Source: Octopus bimaculoides
Taxonomy: Eukaryota
Direction of reading: 5' to 3'
NCBI RefSeq assembly: GCF_001194135.2
Contig: NC_068994.1
Coordinates: 1,859,462-1,914,509 of the forward strand
DNA length: 55,048 bases
Below the pieces are notes generated by a model, which was not told where the DNA came from, ran no database searches, and saw nothing but the letters and a program-made list of their open reading frames with translations. This document shows positions 851-47,963 of the stretch, piece by piece. Within the stretch, counting starts at the first letter, position 1; each line of letters starts with the position of its first letter. A program made the translations under genes and the position numbers.

Positions 851-872
851 CTGAAATTACAGAAGAAAATGG
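851..872 (-). promoter_or_regulatory. 3' splice acceptor of PcdhA large exon
   Basis: Minus strand ccattttcttctgtaatttcag|ATAAAATC, 33 nt upstream of the ATG; same signal in PcdhB and PcdhC. Confidence 0.8.
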
Positions 873-1470
873 AATATTTTTATTGAAATATTTCAATGAA
901 AGCTGGAGGTTTTGGAAAGAATCTTTTGTTGAAAATTACATGTGAATTATGGTAAAGGTGAAAGAAAGGAGTGAACATTTATGATATGTCTTAGTGTATG
1001 TCATAGCAATGTTAAATATATTTTATCAAGAGAACCATTTTGGGGTATTACAGATGATGCATTTTCACTTATTACAAATATAATTCTACATGCGTTTACG
1101 GATTAATATAAAACCAGTGATTTAGTTTGTTAAAAGATAGAGAAAACAAGGTATATAATGGGAAATTTGCCCAACTTTGAAGTAGTTTAGAGATTTCTCC
1201 AAAAATGTTGAAACACAAAATTGACACGGGAGGTAACTGCATTGTTGGTACGTACAATGATTAATTATCTCCCTTATTTTAACATGACTTCATGAGACGT
1301 GTTACTATACATGGTCTGAAATACCATTTCTTGAAAATTTGAATATCCTTTATCTCTTTCTATTAACTAACCTGTCCATGAAATGACAGAATAGTGGATA
1401 TGTTACTCTGGATATAATAATGACTATCCCTTCACTATTAAGTTCAACATCAAATTTTCGTGATGCTGTT

Positions 1471-1543
1471 GCTGAAATAGCTCAGTTGGGAGAGCGTTAG
1501 ACTGAAGATCTAAAGGTCCCTGGTTCAATCCCGGGTTTCGGCA
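1471..1543 (+). tRNA. tRNA-Phe-GAA: tRNA-Phe, anticodon GAA, 73 nt
   Basis: GCTGAAATAGCTCAGTTGGGAGAGCGTTAGACTGAAGATCTAAAGGTCCCTGGTTCAATCCCGGGTTTCGGCA: full cloverleaf, acceptor stem GCTGAAA/TTTCGGC (one G:U), intact A and B boxes; essentially the canonical metazoan tRNA-Phe. No T4 terminator immediately downstream. Confidence 0.95.
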
Positions 1544-1569
1544 TCCGGTGGCTGGTCTGCTTATTTATA

Positions 1570-1972
1570 GGCGTAGGAGTGGCTGTGTGGTAAGTAGCTA
1601 GCTTACCAACCACATGGTCCCGGGTTCAGTCCCACTGCGCGGCATCTTGGGCAAGTGTCTTCTACTATAGCCTCGGGCCGACCAAAGCCTTGTGAGTGGA
1701 TTTGGTAGACGGAAACTGAAAGAAGCCGGTCGTATATATGTATATATAGATATATATGTATGTGTGTGTGTATGTTTGTATGTGTGTGTTTGTCCCCCCC
1801 AACATCGCTTGACAACCGATGCTGGTGTGTTTATGTCCCCGTAACTTAGCGGTTCGGCAAAAGAGATCGATAGAATAAGTACTAGGCTTCTGGGGTCAAT
1901 TTGCTCGACTAAAAGGCGGTGCTCCAGCATGGCCACAGTCAAAAGACTGAAACAAGTAAAAGAGTAAAAGAG
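1570..1972 (+). mobile_element. tRNA-derived SINE (family A in this annotation), near full length
   Basis: A-box-like TGGCTGTGTGG, B-box-like GGTTCAGTCCC, internal (TA/TG)n, tail GGCGGTGCTCCAGCATGGCC...AAGTAAAAGAG; homologous pieces at about 6420-6626, 10028-10081(-), 14420-14465, 34703-34795, 36350-36430, 42549-42925. Confidence 0.85.
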
Positions 1973-1981
1973 TATCTATTT

Positions 1982-2015
<34 letters not shown>

Positions 2016-2089
2016 CTGTCTGTCTGTCTGTCTGTCTATCTATCCTTCTCTCTCTCTCTCTCTCTTGCTTTAGTGATTTATTTATTTTA

Positions 2090-2450
2090 ACATCGTCATT
2101 TAGCGTCCATTGTCCATGCTGGCATGGATTGGATGGCTTGACTAGTAAGCTGGAAGGCTGCACCAGACTCCAGTCAACCAAATCTTAGACTACTTTCCAG
2201 GTTGGACAGTTTATAACACAAAATATGCCTGACTGTATGTATGACAAGCATTATGTCTGATCAAGTGTATGTCATACATAATGACTGAACCATGTTTGAA
2301 AGACATTATAATTGCCTAAATGTATGAGAGATATTATGTCTGGCCAAATGTATGACATCATTATGTCCTTCCTAATGCCAACCACTCTGAGAGTATAATT
2401 GATGCTTTTACATGCCACCGGCATGGGTGCCATTTGTGTGCCGCCGGTAT
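2090..2450 (-). mobile_element. Degenerate (GAT)n-tailed retroposon (family C) interrupted by a degenerate ~28-bp tandem repeat (~2236-2367)
   Basis: CCATGCTGGCATGG...CTTCCTAATGCCAACCAC...GCTTTTACATGCCACCGGC matches the reverse complement of the copies at 13861 and 52380. Confidence 0.7.
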
Positions 2451-2509
2451 CTTCTTCTCAAGCCAAAGGTCTTGGTCATCCCCTGCATGAAACCCAACAC
2501 TCAAAACAA

Positions 2510-2790
2510 GCGGAATTGCTACCTACAGCCTACAATACCATGCCATTCATTCTTTTCAGCTATCTAATACTTTCCTGATTATTCTGGCCATGCCAAGGAG
2601 GCAAACCTTTTGTAACAGTTCTACTGGGCACTCTATTCCGATTTCCTTTATATTACTCTTGATGCCTTCCGATACTGTTCCCAAGGACCCAACAACAATT
2701 GGCATTATCTTCTCCTTCATTTTCCATAGCTGGACTATTTCATACTTGAGAGGGTTGTATCTATCTTTTCACCTTTCTTCCTGACTATTT
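2510..2790 (-). mobile_element. 3' end of RLE-type (R2/R4/NeSL-like) non-LTR retrotransposon
   Basis: Minus translation DRYNPLKYEIVQLWKMKEKIMPIVVGSLGTVSEGIKSNIKEIGIECPVELLQKVCLLGMARIIRKVL resembles the C-terminus of restriction-like endonuclease LINEs. Confidence 0.75.
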
Positions 2791-3146
2791 GTGGGTCAAA
2801 GGGACATGCAAACTCAGCTTTATAGCATATGTGCTGCACCTTGTCCACCACCACTAGGTCCTCTCTGTTATGCTCTAGCACCTGATCTGTTTCGATTGGG
2901 AAATCCAAATAATGTTGCTATATTTTTTTACCTAAGACATAGATTAATGTTTGTTAGTGTGATATTGTGTACTATATGTTTGGATACTGAATTGCATAAT
3001 AAGTAGGATACATCAAATGGAGAATAATATATTATGTAACATTAAAATTATTTATTCTAGAGTTTAAGGGAATATTTAAAATTTATTTCAAGAAAAGAAA
3101 ACATTGAAATCTGTAAAAATTCTCTCCAGAAATGAGAAAAACTTAC

Positions 3147-3315
3147 CAAAATTAGGAATGCTTCAACATTCAAATTAAAAGACGAGATTTCTTCAAGTTA
3201 ATAACTTAAAGTCATCCCATTTTGGTGAGAACAGAAGAATCTGTCAGTTGTCCCCTGTATCCAATAGCAACTGAGTTGGGCTTCAGTGTGTTAATCCCTT
3301 CCATTGGGAATGACC
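3147..3315 (-). other. Predicted 169-nt leader (5'UTR) exon of PcdhA
   Basis: Acceptor aatatattttag|GG (AG at 3317-3316) preceded by a CT-rich tract; donor TTTTG|gtaagt (GT at 3146-3145); 159/169 identical to 6851-7019 with the same length. Confidence 0.7.
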
Positions 3316-3469
3316 CTAAAATATATTTAGATATAACAATATTGTATTCCATGTTATGAAAATAAGAGGGAGAAGGAAAGAGAGAAATAGCTTTGACAAT
3401 AATTGATTTGTAATAATTCTCATTTACCATGATGTTTAGATGAGAGATAAAGAAGATAGATAGTGATTG

Positions 3470-3511
<42 letters not shown>

Positions 3512-3670
3512 GGTTTCACCGATGTAGCCATGGGGAAAATAGCATATACACTCACTGCTAAACAATGTTTGTATTCAGTAAAAGTGCATCCTGTTTTACA
3601 GAATTTAGAATGATTTATATATAATGTCATACAGACTGTACGAAATACATAGAAGTCTTACTGATATAAC

Positions 3671-3770
3671 NNNNNNNNNNNNNNNNNNNNNNNNNNNNNN
3701 NNNNNNNNNNNNNNNNNNNNNNNNNNNNNNNNNNNNNNNNNNNNNNNNNNNNNNNNNNNNNNNNNNNNNN
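3671..3770. other. 100-N gap, probably a placeholder of unknown size (also 7581-7680); 12 further gaps at 8408, 10445, 19811, 22357, 23952, 27756, 30890, 33236, 36607, 40995, 42114, 49258
   Basis: Runs of N in the sequence. Confidence 0.99.
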
Positions 3771-4756
3771 ACATACATCTTGAGAATATTCTTTGTTTGT
3801 GATGTTAATGGTTTTTCTACGAATAATTCCCCAGTTTGTTGGTTCAGTCTGAAATGACCTCGTGTACGTTCAGATGTTTCCGGACTAAAAAAATAAGTCA
3901 CTTTACCATTATTGCCAGAATCTGGGTCTTTTGCAGACAATGTCAAAATAGGGTTGTTGTTAGGATGTGTATTTTTGATGGAAATATTGTAAATATGTTG
4001 TGAAAAAACTGGTGAGTTATCATTCACATCAATTATTTTAATATGAACATGTAAAATTCCTTCTTTTGAAGGTTGTCCTCCATCATTAGCTATCACTTCT
4101 AGATTGTAACTATCTTGTATTTCTCTGTCTAGTTTGTCTCCAAGAACAATTCCTATTTTTGCTCTTCCTGTGATAGTTTTTCTTACAGACAATATAAATG
4201 GATCACTAAATTGTTTCTTCAATTTATATGTAACTTCTGAGTTTTCCATTCCAACATCTTTGTCAAAGGCATCTGGAATTAATCTTTCTGCTCCCTCTCC
4301 ATCATCTTCATCATATGTTATATTCAATTGTGTCTGAGGAAACTCAGGGCTGTGATCATTAATGTCTTCTATAATTACTTTAATTTTAATAATTTTCAAA
4401 AATGTCTTCCTTCTATGTACAGCAACTTTGATGTATCTAACACACTCTGATTCATATGTACACAGTTCCTCAGCATCCAGTGTTTGAGCCGTGTACAATT
4501 TACCATCCTGTGTGACATTAAACAAATGTGAATTGCCTGTTCTTTGTCTCTGTATTTGGTTGTATGTGATGAAGTTATTTCCTACAAGAGAGTCCGTTTC
4601 TTCCATTTGTGTGTCAGCAGCAATATCCCCAACAAAAGTAAAGGGATTGCTTTCTTCTTCTACATGATAGCTCAGATCTACACAGACACAACTGTGTAGT
4701 AATAGATTGAGGACATTTGCAAGTAAGTACGTATTCCACACACAGTCTACTTCCAT
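3771..4756 (-). CDS. Pcdh: Protocadherin B, 5' part of large exon (signal peptide, EC1, EC2, most of EC3); truncated by assembly gap
   Basis: ORF track 3605..4759; true ATG at 4756; motifs LDAEELC-x5-C, DINDHSPEF, AFDKDVG, LDRE, DVNDNSPVF, AKDPDSG; still cadherin-like (NILKMYV) at the gap edge. Confidence 0.95.
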
Positions 4757-4789
4757 CACAGAATGTTAAATCATATCTCGTGGTTTTAT

Positions 4790-4811
4790 CTGAAAGTAAA
4801 GAAGAAAATGG
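4790..4811 (-). promoter_or_regulatory. 3' splice acceptor of PcdhB large exon
   Basis: Minus strand ccattttcttctttactttcag|ATAAAACC, 33 nt upstream of the ATG. Confidence 0.8.
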
Positions 4812-5019
4812 AATGTTTTTATTGAAATATTTCACTGAAAGTTGGAGGTTTTGGAAAGAATTTTGTTGAATGCAACTAAGATTTTCAATTATGGTAAACA
4901 TGAAGTAATGCATATAATAGTTTTTATTTAAATATATATATCTGTTAACAAAATACGTGTGAGCATTATACACACACACACACACACACACACATACGCA
5001 CATATACATACATACATAA

Positions 5020-5330
5020 GCATCAGCAGTAGCTACTCCTAAACGTCTGCAAGATACTTCCTGCCCATGAGACATGGTATAGCTGCAAAGACTATTTACA
5101 GTGCAATCTGCAGGAATGATTGTTTTGATGTATATATGAAAGGTATTTCAAAACAGTCTTCCACACCTTCATAAACAAGGAATACTGGTGGGACACACCC
5201 ATAAAAACAGCGATACAGTGCAAACATAAGAGGTCTGATACTGTTCTGTGGGACAAGTGATAAATCTCATGCACTGTTGTAGAGGTCAGCTGTCCAGTGG
5301 ATTTGAATATTCAGCAACGAGCTTGATATA
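5020..5330 (+). mobile_element. RLE-type non-LTR retrotransposon fragment
   Basis: Translation YFLPMRHGIAAKTIY...EYWWDTPIKTAIQCKHKRSDTVLWDK**ISCTVVEVSCPVDLNI, homologous to 33625-34115. Confidence 0.7.
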
Positions 5331-5749
5331 TTCTTGAACAGACTAATAATAAAGAAAATAGCATTAAACTGCATATAGATAATGTGAAAGAAAGGATTAA
5401 GAATCTATAGTTAGTATAAATGCATCTGCAAGTATATCTAAGTGTACTTTATTCTGGGGCAGTGTTCACTAAATTCTATTGTATCACGTGAAGAGAACCA
5501 CATGTGGATATTACAGAAGATACAATTGTACTTATTAGAAATTAAAAGGATACATACATTTTAAGAGAGATATCAATATAGCCATGCGGTTTCTTTAAAA
5601 GAAAAAAAGAGGAAATTGGTCTTTGTTGAGGATTTTGGACATGTTCTTAGTAGTTTTGAATATCTTCAAAAAATGTCAAGATGGACACGGGAGGTAACTG
5701 CATTTATAGTGTGTACAATGTTTAATTATCTCCCTTATTTCAGTATGCT

Positions 5750-6275
5750 CTGGAGTGGCCATATTCAGTATTTTGGGATGCAAAAATCCTTGTTTATTGA
5801 CTGTCTTCAAAAGGGTCACACCATCAGTTGAGTGAACTACGCCAAATTGCTGCAGAAGTTATGAAAGGCTATCAAGACCAAATGACCAGGAAAACAGATG
5901 AAAAGTGTCTTTTTTTGATGAGGTCAAAGTTCCAGCACACAAGTCCTTGCTTTGAATGGCTGCAGTGGATTTGAACTGGCTGACCACCCTCCCTCTTCTC
6001 GTGATTTGGCCCCATCTTACTAACATCTGTTCACCGACATGAAAAAATACTTGGTTGGCAACCAGTCTCAGCATGATGATGACTTCATATCTACTGTTGC
6101 TGAACTTTTTGACCAAAAAGATCAAAGGTTCTTCTCCAACTAGGATCCAAGCACTGCAATACCAATGGATGAGGTGTATGGGATGCAAGTGGGACTGTGT
6201 TACGAATGAACTTCATTTGGTTACATTCCATGAGAGCATCCTTGTCAACCTCCAAAACTTTCAACCAACCCTCTT
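5750..6275 (+). mobile_element. Mariner (DD34D-type) transposase 3' remnant with right TIR
   Basis: Degenerate FWDAK.LFIDCLQKGHTI...HPPSSRDLAPSY*HLF...IQALQYQW..C..C.WDCV; ends in a TIR-like AAAACTTTCAACCAACCCTC. Confidence 0.85.
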
Positions 6276-6850
6276 TTATGTATATATAGATATACTTTCT
6301 CACTTCCCAAGTGTTAAACTAATACATCTGTTTGTTGTTTACACACCCGTCTTCGTCTTTTGTTTTTTTTTGTAAATTCTCACTATATATATATATATAT
6401 ATTATGTGTGTGTGTGTGTGTGTCCAGTACTTCTAGACAACCAATGTTGGTATGTTTATGTCCCTGTGATTTAACAGCTTGACAAGACAGAACTTTTCTT
6501 TAAGGCCTGGTACCAGGTTTTAAAAAAGTTGCATGGTATCAGTTTGTTCAACTAAAATCCTTTAAGACAGTGCTGTGTCCCAACATGGCTGCAGTCTAAT
6601 GAGTGAAGCAAATAAAAGATAAAAGATATTACATACCATGATGTATTTTTAGCATGCTATTGTGTGATATATGACTGAATATCACATCATTAATAAGAAG
6701 AAATATCCATCGTCAACATGAAGGTGAAATAAAACTATATTTCCTTTACATTTCAAGAATTAAACAATTTCAAGCAATATTTAAAAAAGGAAAACTGATT
6801 TAATACTTAATTCTCTATAAAATTTCTCTCCAGAAATCAGAAAACCTTAC

Positions 6851-7019
6851 CAAAATTAGGAATGCTTCAACATCCAAATTAAAAGACAGGATTTCTTCAA
6901 GTTAATAACTTAAAGTCATCCCATTTTGGTGAGAACAGAAGAATCTGTCAGTTGTCCCCTGTATCCAATAGCAAAAGAGCTGGGCTTCAGTGTGTTGGTC
7001 CCTTCCATTGGAAATAACC
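6851..7019 (-). other. Predicted 169-nt leader (5'UTR) exon of PcdhB
   Basis: Acceptor aatatattttag|GG (AG at 7021-7020), donor TTTTG|gtaagg (GT at 6850-6849); paralogous to 3147-3315. Confidence 0.7.
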
Positions 7020-7363
7020 CTAAAATATATTGAAATATAATGACAATATTGTATTCCATGTTATGGAAATCAGAAAGATACAGAGAGAGAGAGAGTTTTG
7101 ACAGTAATTGATCTATGACGATTTTCATCGACCCTGATGTTTAGATTAAAGATGATGAATGTTATATATACAATAGTATATAATATATATATATGTACAC
7201 ACACACACACACACACACACAGTTAAAGATCTCATTGATGTAGCCGTGGGGAAAATAGCATTTACTCTCAATACTAAACACTTCATACAGTAAATATACA
7301 CTGGTTTATATCTAATGTTACATAAATTTGTTAATATAAGATTAGATATAAATCATGTAGCGT

Positions 7364-7570
7364 CATCATCATCATTATCATCATTTAGCATCCATTTTCC
7401 ATGCTGGCATGGGTTAGACAATTTGACTGGAAGTGGTAAGCCAGAAAGCTGTACTGGGCTCCAGTCTGGTTTGGTCTCAATTCTGTAGCTAAATGCCCAT
7501 CCTAATGCACACTGCTCCCTTTTACGAGTCACCACCACAAGCACCATTTATGTGTCACTGACACTGGCCA
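7364..7570 (-). mobile_element. Family C (GAT)n-tailed retroposon, degenerate
   Basis: (CAT)n followed by TTTAGCATCCATTTTCCATGCTGGCATGGGTTAGAC... Confidence 0.75.
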
Positions 7571-7846
7571 TATATATATANNNNNNNNNNNNNNNNNNNN
7601 NNNNNNNNNNNNNNNNNNNNNNNNNNNNNNNNNNNNNNNNNNNNNNNNNNNNNNNNNNNNNNNNNNNNNNNNNNNNNNNNGTGTGTGCATGTTAGAAAGA
7701 GAGAGAGAAGTGAGGGAGAGAGAGAGAGAAAGACAGACACACAAATAGACAAACAGACAAGTCTAATTTTGGCAGATAGATTTATAACATTTCTTATTCA
7801 CCATTATACTTATATGAGAGATGAATCAGATTCATTGAGAATGTTC

Positions 7847-7880
<34 letters not shown>

Positions 7881-9383
7881 CATATTTGTGTGTATGTATG
7901 TATGTATGTGTGTGTATGTATGTATATATATCTATATGTATGTGTGTGTGTATTTATATAGTTAGTATTCTCACAGATATAGTTAATATACATTCTGTAC
8001 TGCAGACTATTCAACAAATTGACACACTTCCGGAGAGAATAACTCCAAACATACACTTTGTGATTCACAAAAGAATATATAATTAGTGAAAGATAATGAC
8101 GAGTGTATATCAGAGACTTGATAACTGAAGAACAACAGATAGAAAAGGCTTTACCAAACAAGATTTCTCATCATTATATAGCCATGTTTAATGATATATA
8201 CACTAGTAATTATACACTAAATTAACAATATACAACGTGTAGCTCATGCTAAAATGTTAATATATACACTGTACAACATCCTAAACTATAAAAACAGACA
8301 GAACCAAACTCAGATATATAGATATTAATGTCAGAAATTTAATCACCAAATAACACTGTATCACAGCAAAATGTCTGCTGCTATTCACAATATACAACAA
8401 TGTGTCTNNNNNNNNNNNNNNNNNNNNNNNNNNNNNNNNNNNNNNNNNNNNNNNNNNNNNNNNNNNNNNNNNNNNNNNNNNNNNNNNNNNNNNNNNNNNN
8501 NNNNNNNNNNNNNNNNNNNNNNNNNNNNNNNNNNNNNNNNNNNNNNNNNNNNNNNNNNNNNNNNNNNNNNNNNNNNNNNNNNNNNNNNNNNNNNNNNNNN
8601 NNNNNNNNNNNNNNNNNNNNNNNNNNNNNNNNNNNNNNNNNNNNNNNNNNNNNNNNNNNNNNNNNNNNNNNNNNNNNNNNNNNNNNNNNNNNNNNNNNNN
8701 NNNNNNNNNNNNNNNNNNNNNNNNNNNNNNNNNNNNNNNNNNNNNNNNNNNNNNNNNNNNNNNNNNNNNNNNNNNNNNNNNNNNNNNNNNNNNNNNNNNN
8801 NNNNNNNNNNNNNNNNNNNNNNNNNNNNNNNNNNNNNNNNNNNNNNNNNNNNNNNNNNNNNNNNNNNNNNNNNNNNNNNNNNNNNNNNNNNNNNNNNNNN
8901 NNNNNNNNNNNNNNNNNNNNNNNNNNNNNNNNNNNNNNNNNNNNNNNNNNNNNNNNNNNNNNNNNNNNNNNNNNNNNNNNNNNNNNNNNNNNNNNNNNNN
9001 NNNNNNNNNNNNNNNNNNNNNNNNNNNNNNNNNNNNNNNNNNNNNNNNNNNNNNNNNNNNNNNNNNNNNNNNNNNNNNNNNNNNNNNNNNNNNNNNNNNN
9101 NNNNNNNNNNNNNNNNNNNNNNNNNNNNNNNNNNNNNNNNNNNNNNNNNNNNNNNNNNNNNNNNNNNNNNNNNNTTAAATAATCTAATAATAATAATAAT
9201 AATAATAATAGTTAGTATTTTGCCCAGTTAAGTTGTATGTTATGAGTAAACCATTTGATGATATTTGTCAGTGATATAAGGGTGTTTTCTGAATGTCTCT
9301 TTGATTTTCTCTTGTCTCTTCTATATTTTCACATGATATTAAAGATGGAAGATGGGAATAAAACAAGATAGATGTAGACTTAC

Positions 9384-9522
9384 CTCCATTGTCTCATCCA
9401 TAATCAGTGTGGCAGTGTGTGAGGGAGTGTCTAGGAGTGTGTGACCGTCTCTGTGTGTGGTTGTGTGGTAGTGTTTGGTAGTGTGTGGTAGTAGAGATGT
9501 GGATCTCAGGCTGTAACTACTG
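9384..9522 (-). other. Candidate first exon with TATA box
   Basis: Minus strand TATAAAT at 9554-9548, Inr-like GCAGT about 33 nt downstream, non-repetitive body, perfect donor GAG|gtaagtc (GT at 9383-9382). Confidence 0.5.
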
Positions 9523-9547
9523 CTGCTGCAGTCTGCTGCACACACAC

Positions 9548-9607
9548 ATTTATACTCCTACTATACCCTCCTAAAATACACGGTAGTCAAGTGCCAAGTG
9601 TCAAGTT
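9548..9607 (-). promoter_or_regulatory. Candidate core promoter: TATA box plus three tandem (T/C)CAAGT(G/T) heptamers
   Basis: TATAAAT on the minus strand; TCAAGTG-CCAAGTG-TCAAGTT at 9587-9607 resemble the NK2 homeodomain site TCAAGTG. Confidence 0.4.
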
Positions 9608-9747
9608 AGATTTAGGCTGTGCTGTTTGTAGTCATTACTTTGTTATGGGTTTAGTTTGAATTTCTTCTGAGTAGATAGTATGTAATATGCATATATATAT
9701 ATATAGAGATATAGATATAGATATAGATATAGATATGTATGTATGTA

Positions 9748-9967
9748 TGAGGTGGGGCTGAAATGTTCCTGGCTTTGGGTAAAAAAAATACAGAAAGATC
9801 AGTTAATCATGATTTTATTCAACATATTCCCCTCTCAGATTCACACATTTATTGCAATGGTCCTTCAGTTTCTCGAAGCCCTGTAAATGAACTCTGACTT
9901 TAGGGCTTCCAACCACACTTTTCACAATACCCTTAATGCCAGGGAACATTTCAGCTCCCCACTCACA
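9748..9967. mobile_element. Mariner-derived MITE
   Basis: TIRs GAGGTGGGGCTGAAATGTTCCTGGC / GCCAGGGAACATTTCAGCTCCCCACTC in TA context; internal minus frame EKLKDHCNKCVNLRGEYVE* resembles a mariner C-terminus. Confidence 0.8.
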
Positions 9968-9997
9968 TATATATATACTTACGTGTGTGTGTGTGTG

Positions 9998-10028
<31 letters not shown>

Positions 10029-10094
10029 TCTTTTACTCTTTTACTGGTTTCAGCTAGGGGCTGGGACCATGCTGGAGCACCAACTTTCATTGTT

Positions 10095-10400
10095 TTGGGA
10101 TCTCCTTTCGGTACTGTTTTTGGTGAAGAAGCAATTTGGATGAAGCTGCTTTTATTTGTGCCTCCTGCCGCAATGTGAGCTCATCTGGGATTTCAGATAA
10201 AAATTTGTCCAGGTGCTTTTTGAACATTGCCACATCTTCATCTTGCCGACCTCGTAGGTACCTTGGCAGGATGTTAAGCAGTTGTGGTCCCCTGAACCCC
10301 AAGCTGTTGCAATACTTGGTCCTTATCTGAGATAAAGAAAAGGATATCCTTGGTATTATGCAGTGCCATCCAGTTCAATGGTTGGTATAACTTTTAATTC
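10095..10400 (-). mobile_element. CR1/Jockey-group LINE 3' end
   Basis: GFRGPQLLNILPRYLRG..EDVAMFKKHLDKFLSEIPDE...AASSKLLLHQ is typical of CR1-like ORF2 C-termini. Confidence 0.75.
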
Positions 10401-12290: not shown

Positions 12291-12338
12291 TCAACTTGTT
12301 CTAGAAATTAGTTTGACTTCCACTCTCAGTCAATTCAG

Positions 12339-12453
12339 GATGCACCCCTGTTTAATAAGCATAGTTTGTGGGAAAAAGCAAATGTTGCATGCTTCATTAT
12401 CCACTTGCATTTGCTTTTCCCCACAAACTATGCTTATTAAATAGGGGTGCATC
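12339..12453. repeat. 46-bp inverted repeat (2 mismatches) with 23-nt spacer
   Basis: GATGCACCCCTGTTTAATAAGCATAGTTTGTGGGAAAAAGCAAATG (12339-12384) versus 12408-12453. Confidence 0.95.
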
Positions 12454-18948: not shown

Positions 18949-18975
18949 TCATCGTTTCGTGAATCTTGTTGGTAA
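18949..18975 (-). CDS. Candidate terminal coding exon for PcdhC (LPTRFTKR* if phase 0)
   Basis: Strong acceptor tttctctcttctcttccacag|TTACC (AG at 18977-18976) followed by unique sequence with no good donor; AATAAA on the minus strand at 18250-18245. Linkage to PcdhC is inference. Confidence 0.3.
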   Translation of the reverse strand, partial: LPTRFTKR

Positions 18976-33299: not shown

Positions 33300-33443
33300 A
33301 GAAAACTCACCCCAGCCTTGCTACACCTTTACTCCTGAAGGCCCTCCACAGGCCATTGGTGCAGCCCTTCCTCTCTGGAAGATTAAATGGAAAAAATAAG
33401 CAAAAGGGAACAATTAAAATATTTTGAGTTAATCAGTGAACTT

Positions 33444-33495
<52 letters not shown>

Positions 33496-35360: not shown

Positions 35361-35399
35361 TATTCTTTGTGTACTGGCTGGTGATCATTATCATTATTA

Positions 35400-35891: not shown

Positions 35892-35926
35892 TCATCATCA
35901 TCATCATCATAATAATAATAATAATA

Positions 35927-35962
<36 letters not shown>

Positions 35963-37216: not shown

Positions 37217-37270
<54 letters not shown>

Positions 37271-38539
37271 TATGTATTCACTTAAATTTGCATGTAGATA
37301 TATACCAAAATAAAAATACATATATACACATTTACACAAAAACACCACTGACACATATATTTACACATGTGTGTGTGGGTGCACTTAAACACGTACTTAT
37401 AAATGTAAACAAACTTATATGTAGAGATAAGAGATATGTAAACAATCAGTGGCATGGTACCTTGTACACATATTGATCCATGTACTCCGACGCACCCAGA
37501 TTGATATGTGCATAGGCATTCACATACGTATACATACAAAGACATGCAAGTTCACATACACACACCCTGTTGTTATCGGATTTTGCTTTTATCTTGAATA
37601 AGACAGTTAAATAAACAACTGGATGAACTCACAAGACAAACATCATCGTCATCGTCATCGTCATCATTATCAGATTTGGCAGAGTCGTTAGAGCATCCAA
37701 CTCAATGCCATGGAATAAATTTTTCACCTGTTTACATTCTTAATTTAAAGTGTTCTGAGCTTAATTGTTCCTTTTACTTGCCTCCTCAAATCAATTAATT
37801 AAAATACTAATGATGTATTATTGGGAAAAAGGGGTGCAGCAATATAGTTCACTGGTCCCTTTCTTCAAACTCGATGTCTTGTGCCTATAAAAGGAATTAT
37901 TATCTATAAAAATTGCTCCAAATTTTAATTTTATTTTTAACTTTTAATCCCTGTGAACCTTTTTGGAGATCTCTGAGAATGAGGGCGAAAGGGAGACATC
38001 AATTTATCCTCAGTTTGGAGACCAACCCCTGCGAGTTCTGTTGAAAACCCCTATTGGTCCTTATTGGTCCCATTAGCTCTGTTAGCTTCTTGTTGTGGTG
38101 TTACTGAAGAGTTCAATTGTGGCCAATAAATACCAAAAGTCTTGCTTATTTTTTTCTGCATGATTCCACAATGATTTGACAGTTTCCGTTCCACTGGAAG
38201 TTATATTATACTCAACGAGCACAAACTCACTTCTCTTCACTTTTACTTTCATTATTAAACATTTTAATATTTCCATTCTTTTAGAATTTCATTCTCTAAG
38301 AAGAAAAAAAAATCGAAAGCATTTTCTAAGAAAATGCTTTCGATCTTTTTTTCTTCTTGAATGAAAACTTTGCTATTCACTGTTGACAAACTAAACAATT
38401 TCACGTCTGCTGGATCCTGGAACTGAAGAATCACAAAACAGTTTGATAGCAAAGAAGATATTTCACTTTTGTATTATTATATTTTGTCAAAAACTTCTAT
38501 TCTCGTTTCACATTAAAACAACCTTCTCTATGGATTGAC

Positions 38540-39180
38540 ATCAGACGTGAAGCAACAAGAGAAAGAATGAGACAATAGAGACAAAGAAGAGAACAAAGAC
38601 TGGAAATAAGAGAAAGTTTGAGACAAAACCAATGGATAAGAAGAGCCAAGCTGAGCCCAAATGTAGAGGATAGCTATACTATCAAAGAGAGATGTCAACA
38701 GACATGAAGAAAGAGACGGAGAGAGAACAGCAAGCTGATTATAGAGAACAGCCTTGAGAGAAAGAAGTGCAGTAAAATAAGTGGAGAGATGAGAGAAAAT
38801 TTAAGAAAGAAATCAAACGGTGATGAAGACGCATGAACCACAAATAAATGCTCAACTTGAAAAATGTTGAAACAAAAAGACAACAGCAGAGATGATTTGG
38901 TATTTCCATGATATGATAAACAGGTTGTTGGTGAACCTCATCACATTGGAGAAATTAACAGATCCTGTCCTCATTGTGATGGTTTGACATTCAGAAATTG
39001 GTTTCTTAATTTGTGCCACAGCACTAAAGTGTGATTTCCTGATGAACTAAGACTACAATCTGATGTGTGTAAAGAAGTGGGGATTAATTTCAGGGAAAAT
39101 ATTCAAAAATTATCATTGTGTTGTTTCCATTGCTGGTGCAAAAATCATTAGACAACCGACATTTATAAGTCTCTGTTTTT
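38540..39180 (+). mobile_element. Helitron Rep/helicase N-terminal remnant
   Basis: Charged R/E-rich leader then HHIGEINRSCPHCDGLTFRN..LNLCHSTKV*FP...NFRENI(fs)NYHCVVSIAGAKI, matching the Helitron N-terminal zinc-finger / F..NIR.YN motif. Confidence 0.75.
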
Positions 39181-39477
39181 ATAAGTCTCTGTTCTTTTTT
39201 TAGAGAACTTGGAAATTCAAAAATTATTGGCTCTTAGAGCTATAGAGACAGAGAAACAAAGGAAATGAGATAAAGAAAGACTGTTGTAAAACATAATATA
39301 GAATTGATAATGTCAACTGAATATTGTATACAGACAGGTCTTGACCTTCACACTACAATTTTTGGATTCTATTCATTGGTTTTGAAATCACTTTTGGTTA
39401 AATTTAAATCAGCTGAGTTATGTTTACTAATTAATATAATATTACTAACACTATAATTTATCTAATTCTTAATTTTT

Positions 39478-39670
39478 CATTGTCTAGCTAATAATTATAC
39501 ATCCTATTGTTTGATTAATCATTATAAAATCTATTGTCTGGCTAAATAATTATAAAATCTGCTGTTTAGCTAATTATTATAAAACCTATTCTCTGGCTAA
39601 TTAATATTAAATCTTTGTTTAACTAATTATTTTAAAAACTATTGTTTAGCTAATTATTATTTTAAAAATC
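39478..39670. repeat. AT-rich degenerate ~27-bp tandem repeat (about 7 units)
   Basis: Consensus approximately ATTATTATAAAATCTATTGTTTAGCTA. Confidence 0.75.
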
Positions 39671-41859
39671 TTCAACACAATAAACATTGTTATGAAGGGA
39701 GATTTATAAATTTATGCATAAAATGAAGATTTATAAATTGTGGAACATCCACGAGTTCCACTGGTGAATGGAAATGGTTCAATTGCTAATTAGTTGACAT
39801 CATTAAATCGTCTGAAGATGTCATTAGTAAAATGTTAAGTTTGTTTAGTGAAATCAAAAGCTAATTGTATTTTACTTTGATGTTTTATGGAACTGGGAAA
39901 AGTACAAATTAATTATTCAATACAAAGAAAGTGGGGGGACCTCACAAACAACAAACAACAATTCTCAAAAAATGGTCAGGAATGTTACAGATTTAATGGG
40001 GAAACAGTTATATGAGGGGACTTACAGTTCCCGTGAGGATGGAAGGTGCATAAATTGAGACAGTTTTAACAGGGAACACAATTTTATAAGATGAGTTGGG
40101 GTTCTTTGGAGAGGCTGCAGAGTTTTATATGGAGAAATAGGAATTTATTTGCTCAGGAAATGTTTTTTAGCAGCAAATCTGTAGAGAATGGTAGTCTTGC
40201 AAGGGACGGCAGCAGTATGGTGGTGAAAAGAGTAGGGGTGCTAGTGTTTGAGATGGTAGTAGTAGTGGTGCTAGTTGTTGTTCAAATGGTAGTGTTGGAG
40301 TCAATGGTGCTAACTATAGTAGTAGTGGTGGTGGTGGTGGTAGTAGTAGTAATGGTGGTGTTAGTGGCAGTAATGGCAGTGGTATGATGGCAACAGTGAT
40401 TGGAAGAGGGTGCGTGTGTTTATATTTATAGTAAAGTGTGTGTGTGTGTGTGTGTGGAAGAGGAAGTAAGGAAGTAGGATGTAATGAGGAGGAGGATGAT
40501 GATGATGATGTGTAGAGAAGACACGTTACTTGCCCTGAAACTACAGGCTGAGGAGCAGAGAGAGAGAGAGAGAGTGCGTGTGTGCGTGTGATGCACATGG
40601 ATAAAGTCTTCCTTTATATTCTGTCAATCAATAAAACTCTGGCTGCCATAACGACAACTACACCTAACCCCCACCCCACCCCCACTCCCACACCACTCCT
40701 CACTCCTCACATCCCTGAACAGACACACAGACATACAGACAGACAGCTGAAGAGGTGCATGGTAGCGGTGGTGGTGGTGGTGGTCAGAGGTGGGGGGGTT
40801 GTCCTGTGTTTATGGCAGTATTTAGTGGCAGTGGATGGCGATGGTAGTGGTGGTGGTGACGGCGGTGGTGGTGGTGGTGGTGCTGCTGCTGCTGTTAGGA
40901 AGTAAGGTTTGGCTGTCTTGCCTCCTGGATCTTTATTATAGAGGTGTATTCACAGAACTATAATACACACAGACACACACACACACACACATATNNNNNN
41001 NNNNNNNNNNNNNNNNNNNNNNNNNNNNNNNNNNNNNNNNNNNNNNNNNNNNNNNNNNNNNNNNNNNNNNNNNNNNNNNNNNNNNNNNNNNNNNNNNNNN
41101 NNNNNNNNNNNNNNNNNNNNNNNNNNGGGGGGGGGGGACAAACATAGACATACAAATAAATGTACATATGTAGTATGCATGTATGTATATGTGCATGTGT
41201 GGATGGATGGATGTATACTTGTGTATATGGAGAAGTTTTCTGTTAAGCATTCATTATTGAAACTACCATAACTTTAGTCTAAACTTTTGATTTTTTTGTC
41301 TTAAAAACTTCTCCATATTTATTTATTTATTTATTTATTTCTCACTTCTTTATTGTTTTGTTTGAAACCAAAACAATAAATTCACTCAATTCCTCCATAT
41401 TTCTACACCATTCCCCCAACACCAAACTCGTTTTCTCCATTTTATTGGCAGCTGTTATTGTCGTTTTATTGATGGTGAGAATTATAGAAGAGTTTCTATG
41501 TCTGTTTGGCATTGGTTATCACTGGACTTCACATTTTTCTGACCATTAATGTCACATTTATCTCTGTAAACAGGAAGCAATTTCATCATAGACATACTAA
41601 CTGTACTATAAGTACCAAGACCGTTACTAGTACATTCAGTTTTATCATGGATTTTGTTAATATATAAACTGCCATCCTTCCATCACCCAACCTTTATCAT
41701 CATTCTTTAGAAGATGGCAACTATTACCGGATGACTTTTTTAGATTCTGTATATCTCACTACAAGGAGAGTTTGGGTGAATACTTAGGTAGTTTCATTTT
41801 ATAATCCCACCAGGGACCAGGTTATATATGATGGCCTCAATGCTCGTCTCACATAACTG

Positions 41860-42525
41860 GCACTGGTGGCACGTAAAGGGCACATTTTGAGCATTGGGCC
41901 TCATGGAGACAAAGTGGTTGAGTTCCTTTCAAACATTGGGGCACATGGAGGCAAAGCGACTGAGTTCCTTTCGAGTGTTGGGCCTCATGGAGACAAAGTG
42001 GTTGAGTTCCTTTCGAGTGTTGGGCCTCATGGAGACAAAGTGGTTGAGTTCCTTTCGAGTGTTGGGCCTCATGGAGACAAAGTGGTTGAGTTCCTTTCGA
42101 GTGTTGGGCCTCANNNNNNNNNNNNNNNNNNNNNNNNNNNCTGAGTTCCTTTCGAGTGTTGGGCCTCATGGAGACAAAGTGGTTGAGTTCCTTTCGAGTG
42201 TTGGGCCTCATGGAGACAAAGTGGTTGAGTTCCTTTCGAGTGTTGGGCCTCATGATGGCAATGACTGAGGCCTTTGGCATTATGTCCTGCTTGAGAAGAC
42301 GACCCATCAAGTCAAGCAAAATCGCAGTGGTAGCAACTATGGTGTCACACAAATGGCACCAATGCTGGTGCCATGTAAAAGCACCCATTACACTCTCAAT
42401 GGTTGGCATTAGGAAGGGTATCCAGCTGTAGAAACCATGCCAAAACAGACTGGGGTCTGGTGCAGCCTTCCAGCTTACCAGCTCCAGTCAAACCGTCTGA
42501 TCCATGCCAGCATGGACAATGGATG
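41860..42525 (+). mobile_element. Family C-related retroposon containing an expanded 42-bp minisatellite
   Basis: GGTGGCACGTAAAGGGCAC...[repeat]...GTAAAAGCACCC...GGTTGGCATTAGGAAGGGTATCCAGCTGTAGAAAC...CATGCCAGCATGG. Confidence 0.75.
41894..42253. repeat. 42-bp minisatellite, at least 7 units (27-N gap inside)
   Basis: TTGGGCCTCATGGAGACAAAGTGGTTGAGTTCCTTTCGAGTG with unit starts 41894, 41936, 41978, 42020, 42062, 42159, 42201. Confidence 0.95.
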
Positions 42526-42548
42526 TGTGTGTGTGTGTGTGTGTATAT

Positions 42549-42925
42549 AGGCACAGGCATGACTGTCTGGTAAGAAACTTGCTTTCCAACATCATGGTTC
42601 TGGGTTCAGTCCTACTGCATGGTGCCTTGGGCAAGTGATTTTATTTACTATAGCTTCAGGCTGACCAAAGCCTTGTGAGTAAGTTTGGTAGACAGAACCT
42701 GGAAGACACCCATCTTATATATATATATGTGTGTATGTGGTGGTGGGAGTATGTGTGTATATTTATGTGTGTGTGTGTGTCTTTGTGTTTGTGTTTATCC
42801 TCCATCACTACTTAACAACCAGTGTTGGTTTATTTATGTCCCTGTGACCTATCAATTCAGCAAAAGTAACCAATAGAAGAAGAGCCAGGCTTAAAAGGAA
42901 TAAGTGCTGGGGTCAATTTATTCAA
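42549..42925 (+). mobile_element. Family A SINE, degenerate near-full-length copy
   Basis: Colinear with 1570-1972 (GGTTCAGTCC B box, GACCAAAGCCTTGTGAGT, TAAGTGCTGGGGTCAATTT). Confidence 0.8.
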
Positions 42926-43210
42926 TTAAAATTCTTCAAGGCAGAATAAGAGAATCAGTGTGAAACAATGAAACAAGGGGATGTACCTTTAGAATTACTG
43001 ATACAGGCATTCACTGGGGTTCCACACAGTTTTCTTCTACTTAATTTCGTGGACAAGAACCAGAGGCTGTAGAGAAACAGGCTTTCCATGAAGTGCCAGG
43101 CAGTGGATATGAACCCTTCACCTCAGCAGGCTTGCAACAAAGTCTCTTGAACCACGTTTGTGTGTGTGTGTGTGTGTGTATCCATAGACATAGAGAGAGT
43201 AGGCGGGTGA

Positions 43211-44055
43211 GGGGTGGGGTGAGGTGGAGAATGAGTGGCAAGCATCCAGACAGAAGAGAGGAGGAGTGTCAACAACAACAACAATGCCAATGACGACGAT
43301 GACAACAACAACAATAGGACGAAGTATTTATAGATATAAGTCTTGTTTATTTCTATCCTTGAGATGATTCACCAAAGAAGCTGTGAAGTATATATACATA
43401 ATGCGTGTATATATAATGTATGCATATGTATGTATACACGTGTGTGTGTGTGTGTGTGTGTATTAGAATATTGGCACAATTGGATATCACATGGTTTTGT
43501 GATGGTAATAATGGTGGTGGTGGTGGTGTAAAAAACAGAGCCAGACGGTTTCTCAAATATCACCACCTTACCAAAGATACATTATACAACGTAGTCTGTG
43601 GTACACTAAGCCCAGTCAGCAAAAGATGAGTTGGGCATGGCTGGAATGTCTATGACCATAAGCCTGCATAATCCAGGCTGGCCACGACCACTAAACAACA
43701 CCAGTGTGTGATATCTAAGATATCAACTATATCTCCCCTACCTTGCCATATATCACATCTGTTGGATACACCATCCCCCATCACACTAGTTCACCCCCAC
43801 ACCATCACTGTGGGATATCCACCACCACCAACACCACAAGGCCATGTGATATCCAGTTGTTGTGCCAATATTCTATATATATACACCACAGATATTTCAC
43901 TGAATCATCCCCACAATAGAAATAAACATAATTGTATCTATAAATATCTTGTCCTGTTGTTGTTGTTGACACTGTTGCTCCACCTCTGCTTCTGCCACCA
44001 CTCTTTTTTCTGTCTGGACAGTTGCCACTCATTTGCCACCTCATCCCATCACCCG
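43211..44055. repeat. Diverged inverted duplication: arms about 43211-43527 and 43819-44055
   Basis: Colinear blocks AATGAGTGGCAA..TCCAGACAGAA, GTGTCAACAACAACAACA, TATTTATAGATA..TGTTTATTTCTAT..GATGATTCA, TAGAATATTGGCACAA..TGGATATCACATGG occur in opposite orientation. Confidence 0.85.
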
Positions 44056-44536
44056 TCCGACCCTCCACTCTCACCCCACCTATCCACCCCCCACTCTACA
44101 CTCTTACCAACACTCCAATGTTTCCAGAGTGTGGCTACTTTTCAACAAACTTCCATATTTAGACGTGTATGTGTGTGAGAAAAACAGACACAATGTGTCT
44201 GTATGTGTTTATGTATGAGCTGGTCTTTTATGTGTGTGTGTGTGTGTGTATCTGTATGTACGTATTTGTATAAGAGAAGAGCTATACATGTGTACATATA
44301 GATGTATGTGTGCAATGCATATATACACACACACATGCACACACATACATCATACATATACAAACATATATATATATATATATGTATACACACATATATG
44401 TTATATATATAATGTATAGATGCATATGTATCTATGTGTGTGCACATGTCCCCTTGCCTCTCTCTATATATATAGAGAGAGAGAGAAAGAGAGAGAGAGG
44501 AGAGGGAGAAGCGAGAGAGGAGAGATATAGATAGAT

Positions 44537-44567
<31 letters not shown>

Positions 44568-45115
44568 TAGATAATATGTGCAATTTAAATTCAAATACTA
44601 ATTAATAAACAAATTTGTTGGAACCTTTTTTTTACCTTTCAGAACAAAAAAAAGCAAATGAATTTTCACTTTAATATTACTTTCAAATTTTACAACCCTA
44701 CATCAAAAATCAAAATCTAATCTGAATAAATGTCTCTCACTCATTAACCATTATTCTTGAATAACTCAACCTTAACTTATTATCAACACTTTTTTTTCTC
44801 AGTTTTCCCCTAATAATATCCTTTAGAAATGTAAAGGATATGGTTTTCATATGAAAGGCCTTTGTTCCATAATTTCATAAACTGTTGAAATAATATCTAT
44901 AACCATAAATATATCATTCTCACGCCACCCAAACACACCACGAGTATCACTTTCTCCACATATATAGAGTCATTAATTCATCATCTTTTCTCCCATTAGC
45001 TATGTTTATTGAACACAGCCTGAATTATGATATCTCTATTAGATCCTCATTATTATGTTTAATTGATAATTCCACCCTACCTATTCCACCATCCTTCCCC
45101 ACTTCCACTAACCCT

Positions 45116-45340
45116 CATCATCATCATCAAATGTCCGTTTTCCATGCTGGCATGGGTTGCACAGTTTGGTAGGATCCAGCAGGCCACAAGACGGCATCCA
45201 AGAAGCTCCAATGTCTGCTTTTGCCATGCTTTCTACAGCTGGATGCCCTTCCTAACACCAACCACTTTACAAAGTGTTCTGGGTGTGTTTTATGTGGCGC
45301 CAGCACCTGAGGGGCTGCCAAGTTGCTTGCAAGATAAAGA
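45116..45340 (-). mobile_element. Family C retroposon
   Basis: (CAT)n...TTTTCCATGCTGGCATGGGTTG...TTCTACAGCTGGATGCCCTTCCTAAC. Confidence 0.8.
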
Positions 45341-45506
45341 ACAATGAAAGGGAAAAGCTCCCTTGACTAAGTGGCAGTGGTGGTGGTGGGGATTTGTGAG
45401 TTGGGGGAGGTGGCTTTATGCCAAGTGTTGGGAGTGTAGAGGATATATAAACATAATGGTAATCAATATGGCTATATTTATATCAGGTTGAAGATGGGGA
45501 AGTGTA

Positions 45507-45515
45507 ACTTACCAG
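45507..45515 (-). promoter_or_regulatory. 5' splice donor ending the PcdhC large exon (phase 0)
   Basis: CTG|GTAAGT, GT at 45512-45511, after codon 799 (…QSVLL). Confidence 0.85.
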
Positions 45516-47909
45516 CAGAACTGATTGAGGTCTTTTGTCAATGGTTGATGTGGTCCATTCACTTTGTGACTCATATTGAGGATAAAATTCGGCTTTAGTT
45601 TCTATCAACTGAGTATTCCTGGCCATCATATCATTGGAACTCCTGTTTAGTGTGTCTGATTTCTTCGTAACGCATGTATAATGGCTTTTTTCTCGGTCGG
45701 AGTTGATTTCCGTGATATACTGGTTGTTTCGGTTATTGTTACATCTGACCACACACAGAGTTATGGACACTACGATCGCCACCGACACTATCACAGCAGA
45801 TGTGACAATAACAATGACCCAAGTTAAGTTGATCATTTTATCAGACTTTAACTGGACGGTGGACAGTGCTGGAGATGTCTTGTTACTAACGGTCAGTGTC
45901 AAAGAGACAGTTGTAGTGGCTGACAGAACAGGAGTACCACTGTCTTTTACGGCAAACTCCAGTTGATAGGATCCAGCATCATTTTGGTAAACTGTCCGAG
46001 AGAATGCAAACACTCCTGTGTAAGGGTTAATCTCAAATAATAGTTTATCATTTCCACTGAGGATGCTGTATCTGAGGAAAGCATTTAAATGGCTGTCTCT
46101 GTCGGAAGCCCTCAGAACTGCAATTTCATTCTTACTCTGGGGATGATAATGGACATCAAGTGTGAAAGGGTTCACACCTGGGAAGGTAAAGTAAGGAGCA
46201 TTGTCATTTTTGTCTAAAACCTCCACCACCACATTGGCAGTGTTGTTCAATGGTGGAATTCCATTGTCTTTGACAAACACTTGGAACTTATATTGCTCCT
46301 GTTTTTCTCTGTCTAAGGAACTGGTTGTAGAAATAAAGCCATAACTTGTGATACGGAATGGTAGGGTCACTTTATTGTTACTCAACAAATGATAGGAGAG
46401 TTGTCCAGAAAGGTCTTGGTCTGGGTCAGTGGCATTGATGTAACCAATTGGGAAATTAGTTTTACCATTTTCATAAGTGAGGAATTTAAATACTTCTTTC
46501 ATAAACTGTGGTTGAACATCATTGACATCCATCACTTGAATGAAGAATTTTCTCTCTGTTTTCATTGAGGGAGATCCTTTATCTTCACATGAAATACTGA
46601 TGTCATAGTGGTCCCTAGTTTCTCTGTCCACAAATTTCTTTAATGTAATTTTATATTCTTTTGATCCTAAATCTAAAAGAAGGAATTTATCATGGTGTAG
46701 GCTACATTCCACCTCACCGTTCTGTCCAACATCATTGTCAATAACACTGACATAAGCTATGAAACTGCCGACTTTGATTCCTTCAGAAATGGCTGCTGTG
46801 TTCTCTCTCAGCTCAGTGACAAAATTTATGTCTATCTTAGGAACATTATTTTGTTGGTTTATTACATTTATTAAAACCATTGCTGTGGAACTTGAGGAAG
46901 GATTGCCCCCATCTTTAGCTTCAACAAACAACTTGTATGTCTGTTTTTGTTCGGAATTTAATGTTTTCTGTGTGAAAATTTCACCAGTCACTTCGTTCAG
47001 TTTAAAATAAGATTTGGCAATATCAGAGGTCGCAGAACTAATGTGATATGTGACTTTACCATTTTCACCTAAATCTAAATCACTAGCAGACAGAACAGTG
47101 ATTGGTAAGAATCTTCCATGTGTACTTCTGATAGAAACATTGTAAATATTCTGTGTAAATACTGGAGCATTATCGTTTTCATCTGTCACAGTTATTTCAA
47201 TATTCAGCACCCCTTGTTTTGGAGGAGATCCCCCATCACTCGCAATAATCTGAAGACTGTAACTGTCTTTCTCTTCTCTGTCCAATTTCTCATTAAGTAT
47301 TATAGCTAGTTTAGAACTCCCAGTGATTATTTTCTTCACAGATAACTTGAATGTCTCTCTAAATCTCCGTGTTAATTGGTAAGAAATCTTAGAATTCAAG
47401 TTGCCTACATCTTTGTCAACAGCATTAGGAATTGCCATTTTCAACCCAATTCCATCTCTCTCTGAAAACTTTAACATTACAGATTTCACAGCAAATTTTG
47501 GTTTATGATCATTCACATCTTCTATAATTACTTTAATTTTCAGAATTTTTAAAAATGCTTCACCTTTGTGGACAGCAATTTTGATCGTTTTAAAACATTC
47601 AACATTATATTTGCACAGAGATTCTGCATCAAGTCTCTGTGTTGTGTAGAGCTCCCCTCTTTTAGAAACATTGAATAGCTGTGAAACCCCTGCCTGCTTT
47701 TGCTGCAGCTGATTGAATGTAATAAGATTGGTATGTTGAGACAACATACCATCGAGGAAATGAGATTCAGCTGCCACATCTCCGACGTATGTTCCAATAT
47801 TCTTCTCCTCTTGTACACGGAATGTGATATCTATTGCAAAAGAAATGTCCAGGGAAGATAACAGCAAGCTCACAAGAGCCAACATGGTCCCAGCAGAGCT
47901 GGTGCACAT
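45513..47909 (-). CDS. Pcdh: Protocadherin C, complete large exon: signal peptide, EC1-EC6, TM (~aa 695-721), proximal cytoplasmic tail
   Basis: ORF track 45483..47909 (808 aa if unspliced); six cadherin repeats (DVNDHKP, DENDNAP, NQQNNVP, DVNDVQP, DKNDNAP boundaries), EC1 C-x5-C, hydrophobic TM LTWVIVIVTSAVIVSVAIVVSITLCVV. Met9 (47885) is an alternative start. Confidence 0.97.
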
Positions 47910-47941
47910 CTCACACTTGTATTTTCAATCATCAAAGGTTT

Positions 47942-47963
47942 CTGGAATAAAGAAAGAAAATGG
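47942..47963 (-). promoter_or_regulatory. 3' splice acceptor of PcdhC large exon
   Basis: ccattttctttctttattccag|AAACC, 32 nt upstream of the ATG. Confidence 0.8.

Follow-up and report, generated by a model that had tools for sequence, protein, structure and literature searches.

The large exons of three clustered protocadherin (Pcdh) genes of Octopus bimaculoides, Pcdh A, Pcdh B and PcdhC, appear to be internal exons, and we put at roughly 80% the probability that the 22-nt sequence standing directly before each of them is the 3' splice site of an intron in the 5' untranslated region (UTR), set 32-33 nt before the start codon in octopod clustered protocadherin genes. All three exons lie on the minus strand of the stretch analyzed here, 55,048 nt of contig NC_068994.1 (positions 1,859,462 to 1,914,509; hereafter the window), which corresponds to chromosome CM046614.1 of GCA_001194135.2 in reversed orientation and is identical to the locus of P0001. 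The 22-mer would be made up of a possible branch-point region, a pyrimidine tract and a YAG, with the A of CCAT as the putative branch point. Each gene would then be an ordinary multi-exon unit with at least one short non-coding 5' exon, a large exon, and one or more short gene-specific 3' exons, the large exon running from a short leader and the ATG through signal peptide, ectodomain and transmembrane segment into part of the tail. Whole-gene duplications would have handed down the position of the intron, and this would account for an AG-to-ATG distance kept in paralogues with only about 50% protein identity. The initial annotation of this DNA had likewise taken the large exons to be internal, with a functional acceptor at a conserved position, and this was supported by annotated junctions, by a conservation boundary and by an upstream non-coding exon, as set out below.

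The motif CCATTTTCTT-N9-CAG occurred exactly three times in the window, always on the minus strand, and never in 100 dinucleotide-preserving shuffles, so that the three copies reported by the initial annotation were confirmed. The bare 10-mer CCATTTTCTT was found only at the same three places, against 0.23 copies expected; with up to three mismatches allowed, the 27 matches obtained were at chance level (20.8 expected). The sites and the exons behind them are as follows.

851-872, minus strand: predicted 3' splice site of the Pcdh A large exon (AG 852-851; exact motif)
4790-4811, minus strand: predicted 3' splice site of the Pcdh B large exon (AG 4791-4790; exact motif, near-duplicate of that of A)
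47942-47963, minus strand: predicted 3' splice site of the PcdhC large exon (AG 47943-47942; exact motif)
1-850, minus strand: Pcdh A large exon, 5' part (leader 850-818, 33 nt; coding from the ATG at 817)
3771-4789, minus strand: Pcdh B large exon, 5' part (33-nt leader, ATG at 4756; cut by the gap at 3671-3770)
45513-47941, minus strand: PcdhC large exon, 2429 nt (leader 47941-47910, ATG at 47909, 799 codons)

Exon starts at 850, 4789 and 47941 and start codons at 817, 4756 and 47909 gave leaders of 33, 33 and 32 nt for A, B and C, respectively, in agreement with the 32-33 nt given earlier. The estimate by eye that PcdhC is about half identical in protein to A and B also held, with 49.5-50.8% identity by tblastn (50.8% for Pcdh A). 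Over 933 nt, of which 116 nt lie upstream of the ATG, Pcdh A and B shared 95% identity; the three sites therefore amount to two independent observations, and only the comparison of A/B with C is independent.

As 3' splice sites the three sequences were well formed. CAG was present at 3/3 sites, the pyrimidine fraction between -23 and -4 ranged from 0.80 (A) to 0.90, and the zone from -30 to -3 was free of AG at A, B and C. The PcdhC site of Octopus sinensis was identical save for tgCAG/ACA. The same arrangement was seen in all 13 large exons read in O. bimaculoides, O. sinensis and Argonauta, each with a YAG following a tract of 60-90% pyrimidine just ahead of the start codon; the interval from -30 to -3 was free of AG in 11 of them and contained one AG in the remaining two. 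Leader length varied by subfamily, being 32-33 nt in five Octopus exons, 37 nt in Argonauta, 56 nt in three exons of another O. bimaculoides subfamily and 4 nt in one exon. Every large exon possessed its own ATG and signal peptide, and the N-terminus of Pcdh A, MEVDCVWNTYLL, matched those of Octopus vulgaris P0069 and Argonauta P0110. At its other end, the PcdhC large exon closed with the donor CTG/GTAAGT after 45513.

Upstream ATGs were present in the leaders at 47910-47941, 818-850 and 4757-4789. An ATG at 47930 in the PcdhC leader opened a 21-codon upstream open reading frame (uORF) that overlapped the main ATG out of frame, and the A and B leaders carried a minimal uORF, ATG ATT TAA; neither was kept in Argonauta. 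The intron in front of the PcdhC acceptor also contained a simple repeat, of which O. sinensis had a shorter, interrupted copy. In other systems, UG repeats that adjoin a 3' splice site can influence splicing.

47990-48079, minus strand: (TG)45 microsatellite on the gene strand (a perfect (CA)45), intronic, 27 nt upstream of the PcdhC 10-mer

The limit of conservation between genera fell at the acceptor itself. Argonauta hians has three tandem orthologues of A/B, and comparison of O. bimaculoides Pcdh A with Argonauta unit 1 showed 8/8 identical positions from -8 to -1, 26/37 in the leader and 78/90 in the first 90 coding nucleotides. The likeness stopped a few bases upstream of the AG, at TTTCAG, and farther upstream no meaningful alignment was obtained; TTTCAG and the leader of A were kept in both the Argonauta and the O. 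vulgaris orthologues. The position of the 10-mer was occupied by CTATTTTCTT at the orthologous sites of O. vulgaris, by TATATTTCCTTG or ATGCTCTATAC in the Argonauta orthologues, and by GATTTCTTCT and TTTTTGTTTTTCT in two O. sinensis paralogues. The 10-mer was thus missing in Argonauta and other paralogues, whereas the AG and the leader were retained, and this pattern indicates that the AG and its position are probably under constraint and that the 10-mer is not.

How much weight the 10-mer itself deserves depends on the background chosen. Within 267 kb of fetched loci, counted on both strands, it occurred six times, and four of these copies were at protocadherin acceptors, namely those of A, B, C and the O. 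sinensis orthologue of C, which argues that it is not a generic tract. Among 118 pairs formed from 16 acceptors, exact runs of 9-10 nt at the same offset recurred, also between unrelated sites: one such run was shared by B with a paralogue from O. sinensis, and another by a terminal-exon acceptor with the acceptor of an unrelated large exon; terminal-exon acceptors also showed close variants of the 10-mer, such as CTCATTTTCTC and CACATTTTTTCTT. With other 3' splice sites, and not random DNA, as the yardstick, the sharing of the 10-mer does not stand out. In our reading, it would represent a likeness of pyrimidine tract and possible branch-point region and not a dedicated regulatory word. Gene conversion, which is known in these protocadherin arrays (PMC9068888), may perhaps have aided its sharing. 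The suggestion that the 22-mer acts as a special gate for the ectodomain exons was accordingly not borne out by the O. vulgaris, Argonauta and paralogue sequences.

The same observations bear on the possibility that the 10-mer is a core-promoter or initiator element, in which case the large exon would effectively be a first exon and the AG incidental. CCATTTT resembles what we take to be a YY1-type initiator, the concentration of four of six copies at protocadherin acceptors would fit such a role, and the start of PcdhC isoform X2 at Met9 is compatible with a 5' end inside the exon. We nevertheless consider this very improbable. The element is replaced or missing where the AG and leader are kept, and conservation stops at the AG, whereas a promoter would show it farther upstream. 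Several annotated junctions fall exactly on the AG, and the 400 nt upstream of the sites have no CGCT box, a GC content of 29-36% and 1-3 CpGs.

If the sites are acceptors, a donor is needed upstream, and for A and B a candidate was found in a 169-nt block that we call exon -1, located on the gene strand some 2.3 kb upstream of either acceptor.

3147-3315, minus strand: exon -1 of gene A, 169 nt (acceptor ttttAG/G, donor TTG/GTAAGT)
6851-7019, minus strand: exon -1 of gene B, 169 nt (acceptor after ttttAG, donor TTG/GTAAG)

The two copies were 82% identical, and their core, AATGGGATGACTT, occurred only at 3209-3221 and 6913-6925. Exon -1 aligned with positions 611-770 of the Argonauta contig L005, with acceptor and donor both invariant, and O. 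vulgaris had one copy in each of its two units. Since no conserved reading frame was present in the block, we regard it as a non-coding 5' exon, and its donor is probably the usual partner of the A/B acceptors. In the Argonauta annotation, a 78-aa model (58-185 + 611-719) uses the acceptor of exon -1, which implies at least one more exon farther upstream. The block had also been considered as the LPTR terminal exon of the preceding gene; this was rejected, as no such peptide is encoded in it and it is bounded by an acceptor as well as a donor. A search for a shared promoter or 5' exon upstream of A/B, C and L004a/b yielded only dispersed repeats in both orientations. Within the 5' intron of gene A, in the interval that separates exon -1 from the acceptor, a tRNA-Phe(GAA) gene was identified in antisense orientation at 1470-1546 (plus strand) by both Rfam (66.7 bits) and ARAGORN.

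Use of the acceptors was further suggested by annotated protein models whose sequences fit junctions at the AG. One of them, at a paralogous acceptor, was O. sinensis P0007, which begins MDYLYYRKKAPFSFT-E-DLPSLTNFLV-MKRIKR. Its first 15 residues correspond to an out-of-frame reading of the end of the upstream large exon L004a, joined from the donor CTG/GTAAGT after position 10046 of contig L004 to an exon start at 78072 over a 68-kb intron; this exon start follows directly on ttccAG and precedes by 32 nt the start codon of L004b, the next large exon. A back-splice was rejected for this junction, because the 3' end of L004b itself cannot encode the P0007 N-terminus; the latter fits only the 3' end of the upstream exon, so that this would be a true cross-gene splice of 68 kb. 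Another O. sinensis gene, with an 886-aa product, has a coding range that extends to L004 78089, where the L004b leader has its first phase-0 stop, and the model skips the intervening large exon L004a. O. vulgaris P0122 consists of residues of an upstream exon followed by TPLMIENT, and its join at a PcdhC-type acceptor was deduced from the O. sinensis orthologue rather than from O. vulgaris DNA. At the PcdhC acceptor, RefSeq P0005 (828 aa), the upstream neighbour of PcdhC, ends in ...SVLL-KPLMIENTSVRCAPALLGPCWLL, a tail equal to window positions 47941-47870 read in phase 0 from the PcdhC AG, and its coding range ends at 47870. The P0005 gene range is 124.5 kb and encloses another protocadherin gene (819 aa), so that a P0005-to-PcdhC junction would span about 122 kb and pass over that gene. 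Long gene ranges of 109-135 kb were annotated for P0122 (109 kb), P0005 and P0027.

The P0122 model also has a small intron within its large exon (ACAG/GTGTGCG ... ATAG/AT, compared with L003 at about 9990-10080) that removes the signal peptide and keeps the ORF open from far-upstream exons; it is probably an annotation artefact. P0005 and PcdhC were 68% identical overall, with identity of the last 163 residues falling at about 45513-46001 in PcdhC, and the identical ends look like gene conversion of the transmembrane and cytoplasmic part. Logan contig L002 (P0086), apparently from a different cephalopod lineage, was set aside as uninformative on the junction.

Several observations weigh against the reading of the sites as acceptors of a 5'-UTR intron. 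Use of the AGs rests on annotated protein models and not on junction counts; the annotated junctions presumably derive from RNA-seq reads. The P0005-to-PcdhC junction is ambiguous, because the last 163 residues encoded by both large exons are identical, and short reads could equally reflect a back-splice of PcdhC. RefSeq PcdhC isoform X2 (P0124) starts at Met9, which suggests that some models have their 5' end inside the exon and that transcription may start at or within it. In Argonauta, exon -1 is missing from units 2 and 3, and for PcdhC no same-strand 5' exon was detected within 7 kb upstream in the window or within 10 kb upstream in contigs L001 and L003. Nor did the 10 kb preceding PcdhC contain the N-terminal exons of P0122, either in O. 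bimaculoides or in O. sinensis; the 109-kb range of P0122 suggests that the 5' exon of PcdhC lies tens of kb upstream.

An acceptor so close to an ATG might also receive a spliced leader by trans-splicing, but this closeness is the sole point in favour, and we give the idea almost no credence. Same-strand donors were found or annotated in every case examined, Rfam detected only a tRNA and no spliced-leader RNA in the window, and to our knowledge spliced-leader trans-splicing has not been reported in molluscs.

With strong acceptors and genes arranged head to tail, read-through transcription can splice the donor of an upstream large exon onto the acceptor of a downstream one, and such splices would produce fusion or bicistronic-type RNAs. 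The annotated cross-gene splices, of 68 kb and possibly 122 kb, match the "read-through fusions" reported for the PCDH family of O. vulgaris (PMC9712504). They would yield bicistronic-type transcripts with a short out-of-frame tail rather than new ectodomain combinations. The earlier statement that splice-level cross-talk between the tandem exons is mechanistically possible thus holds, in the form of read-through junctions. Other public models were fused or repeat-bearing: P0024 (O. bimaculoides, 1162 aa), P0055 (1102 aa) and the model starting at 18025 of L007 (1571 aa) were two-protocadherin fusions or contained repeated C-terminal units (SQFYFVLEPQNEW, about eight times). Such models fit a cluster in which read-through is widespread and 3' exons occur in tandem.

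At the 3' side, the donor of the PcdhC large exon was joined either to a 64-nt cassette exon (isoform X1) or to the gene's own terminal exon (isoform X2).

33311-33374, minus strand: alternative 64-nt PcdhC cassette exon, encoding RGRAAPMACGGPSGVKV and then a stop (acceptor cttccAG, donor GGG/GTGAGT)
18949-18975, minus strand: PcdhC terminal exon, coding part, encoding LPTRFTKR and then a stop, 26.5 kb downstream of the large exon

O. sinensis P0123 has the same tail as PcdhC isoform X1. Terminal-exon tails varied by gene (LPTRFTKR, LPARGSKSR, LPTRIPKR and LPTRLKK), and in Argonauta one terminal exon followed each large exon. The 3' exons are therefore gene-specific, and nothing is shared in the manner of the vertebrate constant exons.

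This arrangement bears on the proposal, made in the initial annotation, that tandem ectodomain exons could be chosen at the level of splicing in a Dscam-like manner or by trans-splicing. In its general form, a shared upstream exon or a cluster-wide transcript would be joined to one of several tandem acceptors, as a mirror of the vertebrate system and loosely as in Dscam. The substrate would be long cluster-wide transcripts with introns of 68-122 kb that skip paralogues, and indeed both the P0005-to-PcdhC junction (over the 819-aa gene) and the 886-aa O. sinensis model (over L004a) skip intervening genes; the first coding exons of P0122 lie tens of kb upstream. Argonauta also offers an arrangement in favour, with three tandem units that are 97-98% identical and a single exon -1 upstream of unit 1. 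These copies are each 7.6 kb long (L005 1828-24549), their homology begins 7 nt before the large-exon acceptor, and the upstream non-coding exons precede unit 1 only. We nevertheless regard splice-level choice as unlikely. A separate exon -1 precedes Pcdh A, Pcdh B and each of the two O. vulgaris units, every large exon has its own ATG and signal peptide, and every gene has its own terminal exon and stop. The donors of the cross-gene junctions belong to another large exon and not to a common leader, and the Argonauta copies, which arose very recently, may not be expressed at all or may owe their expression to read-through. The published view also holds that these protocadherin genes are "multi-exonic" and that their diversity stems from full gene duplication rather than alternative splicing (PMC9068888; for multi-exonic genes, see also PMC6339937). 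The Dscam-like and trans-splicing forms of the proposal thus found no support. A narrower version, in which some octopod sub-arrays such as the Argonauta triplet share one promoter and 5' exon and the downstream acceptor that captures the donor decides which protocadherin is made, is similarly doubtful; if true, acceptor choice there would mirror promoter choice in vertebrates.

Comparison with known systems places the octopod genes, read as units with a 5'-UTR intron, closest to ordinary gene structure. An ordinary 5'-UTR intron likewise joins a non-coding exon with a GTAAG donor, through a pyrimidine tract and a YAG, to a short leader and an ATG, and no essential difference was apparent; what is unusual is the closeness of the acceptor to the ATG and its retention across a family of more than 100 members. 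The resemblance to vertebrate alpha and gamma Pcdh genes lies in the large exon, which includes a signal peptide, six cadherin repeats, a transmembrane segment and the proximal tail, and clustered vertebrate genes are also head-to-tail tandem paralogues whose large exon ends in a 3' donor. In vertebrates, however, each variable exon is a first exon that lacks an acceptor, has a CGCT-box promoter to itself and is spliced to shared constant exons, whereas the octopus large exon is internal, with its acceptor 32-33 nt before the ATG, and the 3' exons are gene-specific. The 400 nt preceding A, B and C contained neither CGCT nor AGCG. Dscam1 and the chelicerate sDscam genes are alike in having tandem paralogous ectodomain-coding units in a neuronal recognition family. 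In Dscam1, shared constitutive exons flank the cassettes, of which exactly one is included, and chelicerate sDscam genes combine alternative promoters with shared 3' exons (PMC4835542); neither 5' nor 3' exons are shared in Octopus, and the observed cross-gene junctions join two large exons in series, unlike cassettes used one per mRNA. The closest likeness for these junctions is read-through of conjoined genes, in which the last usable donor of the upstream gene is joined to the first acceptor that the following same-strand gene offers, although the octopus introns are very long (68 kb, possibly 122 kb) and may skip a paralogue.

The internal-exon architecture was already implied by public annotation. 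Our analysis adds that the acceptor keeps its position, that an exon lies upstream, and exactly which donors and acceptors are paired in the fusions. The ectodomain exons of clustered octopod protocadherins would accordingly be internal exons behind a position-conserved 5'-UTR intron and not first exons of the vertebrate type. This structure explains the overlapping and fused gene models in RNA-based annotation of the cluster and calls for caution when individual protocadherins are quantified in single cells or in bulk. The current view that gene duplication rather than splicing accounts for protocadherin diversity in cephalopods is left standing, and the structure raises the question of whether the long cross-gene splices are regulated or noise.

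The assembly of the window contains 14 runs of N, none of which touched the three motif sites. The gap at 3671-3770 interrupts the Pcdh B large exon after 329 codons, and the letters on its far side were not protocadherin coding sequence. The tandem unit measures 7.87 kb in the gapless O. vulgaris assembly against 3.94 kb in the window, so either the 100-N gap stands for several kb or B is truncated. Judged from the O. vulgaris unit, the gap should hide the rest of the B large exon (about 1.45 kb), the 3' intron and the terminal exon, unless B is truncated. The other gaps lie in intronic or intergenic DNA and limit only the search for further exons. Pcdh A runs past the start of the window. 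An exact look-up of the 808-aa PcdhC read-through ORF and of the 807-aa isoform P0121 returned no record. The 808-codon minus-strand ORF at 45483-47909 matched O. bimaculoides "protocadherin beta-16 isoform X1" (P0001, XP_014779592.1) at 99% in a protein search, with more than 2000 cephalopod protocadherins among the matches.

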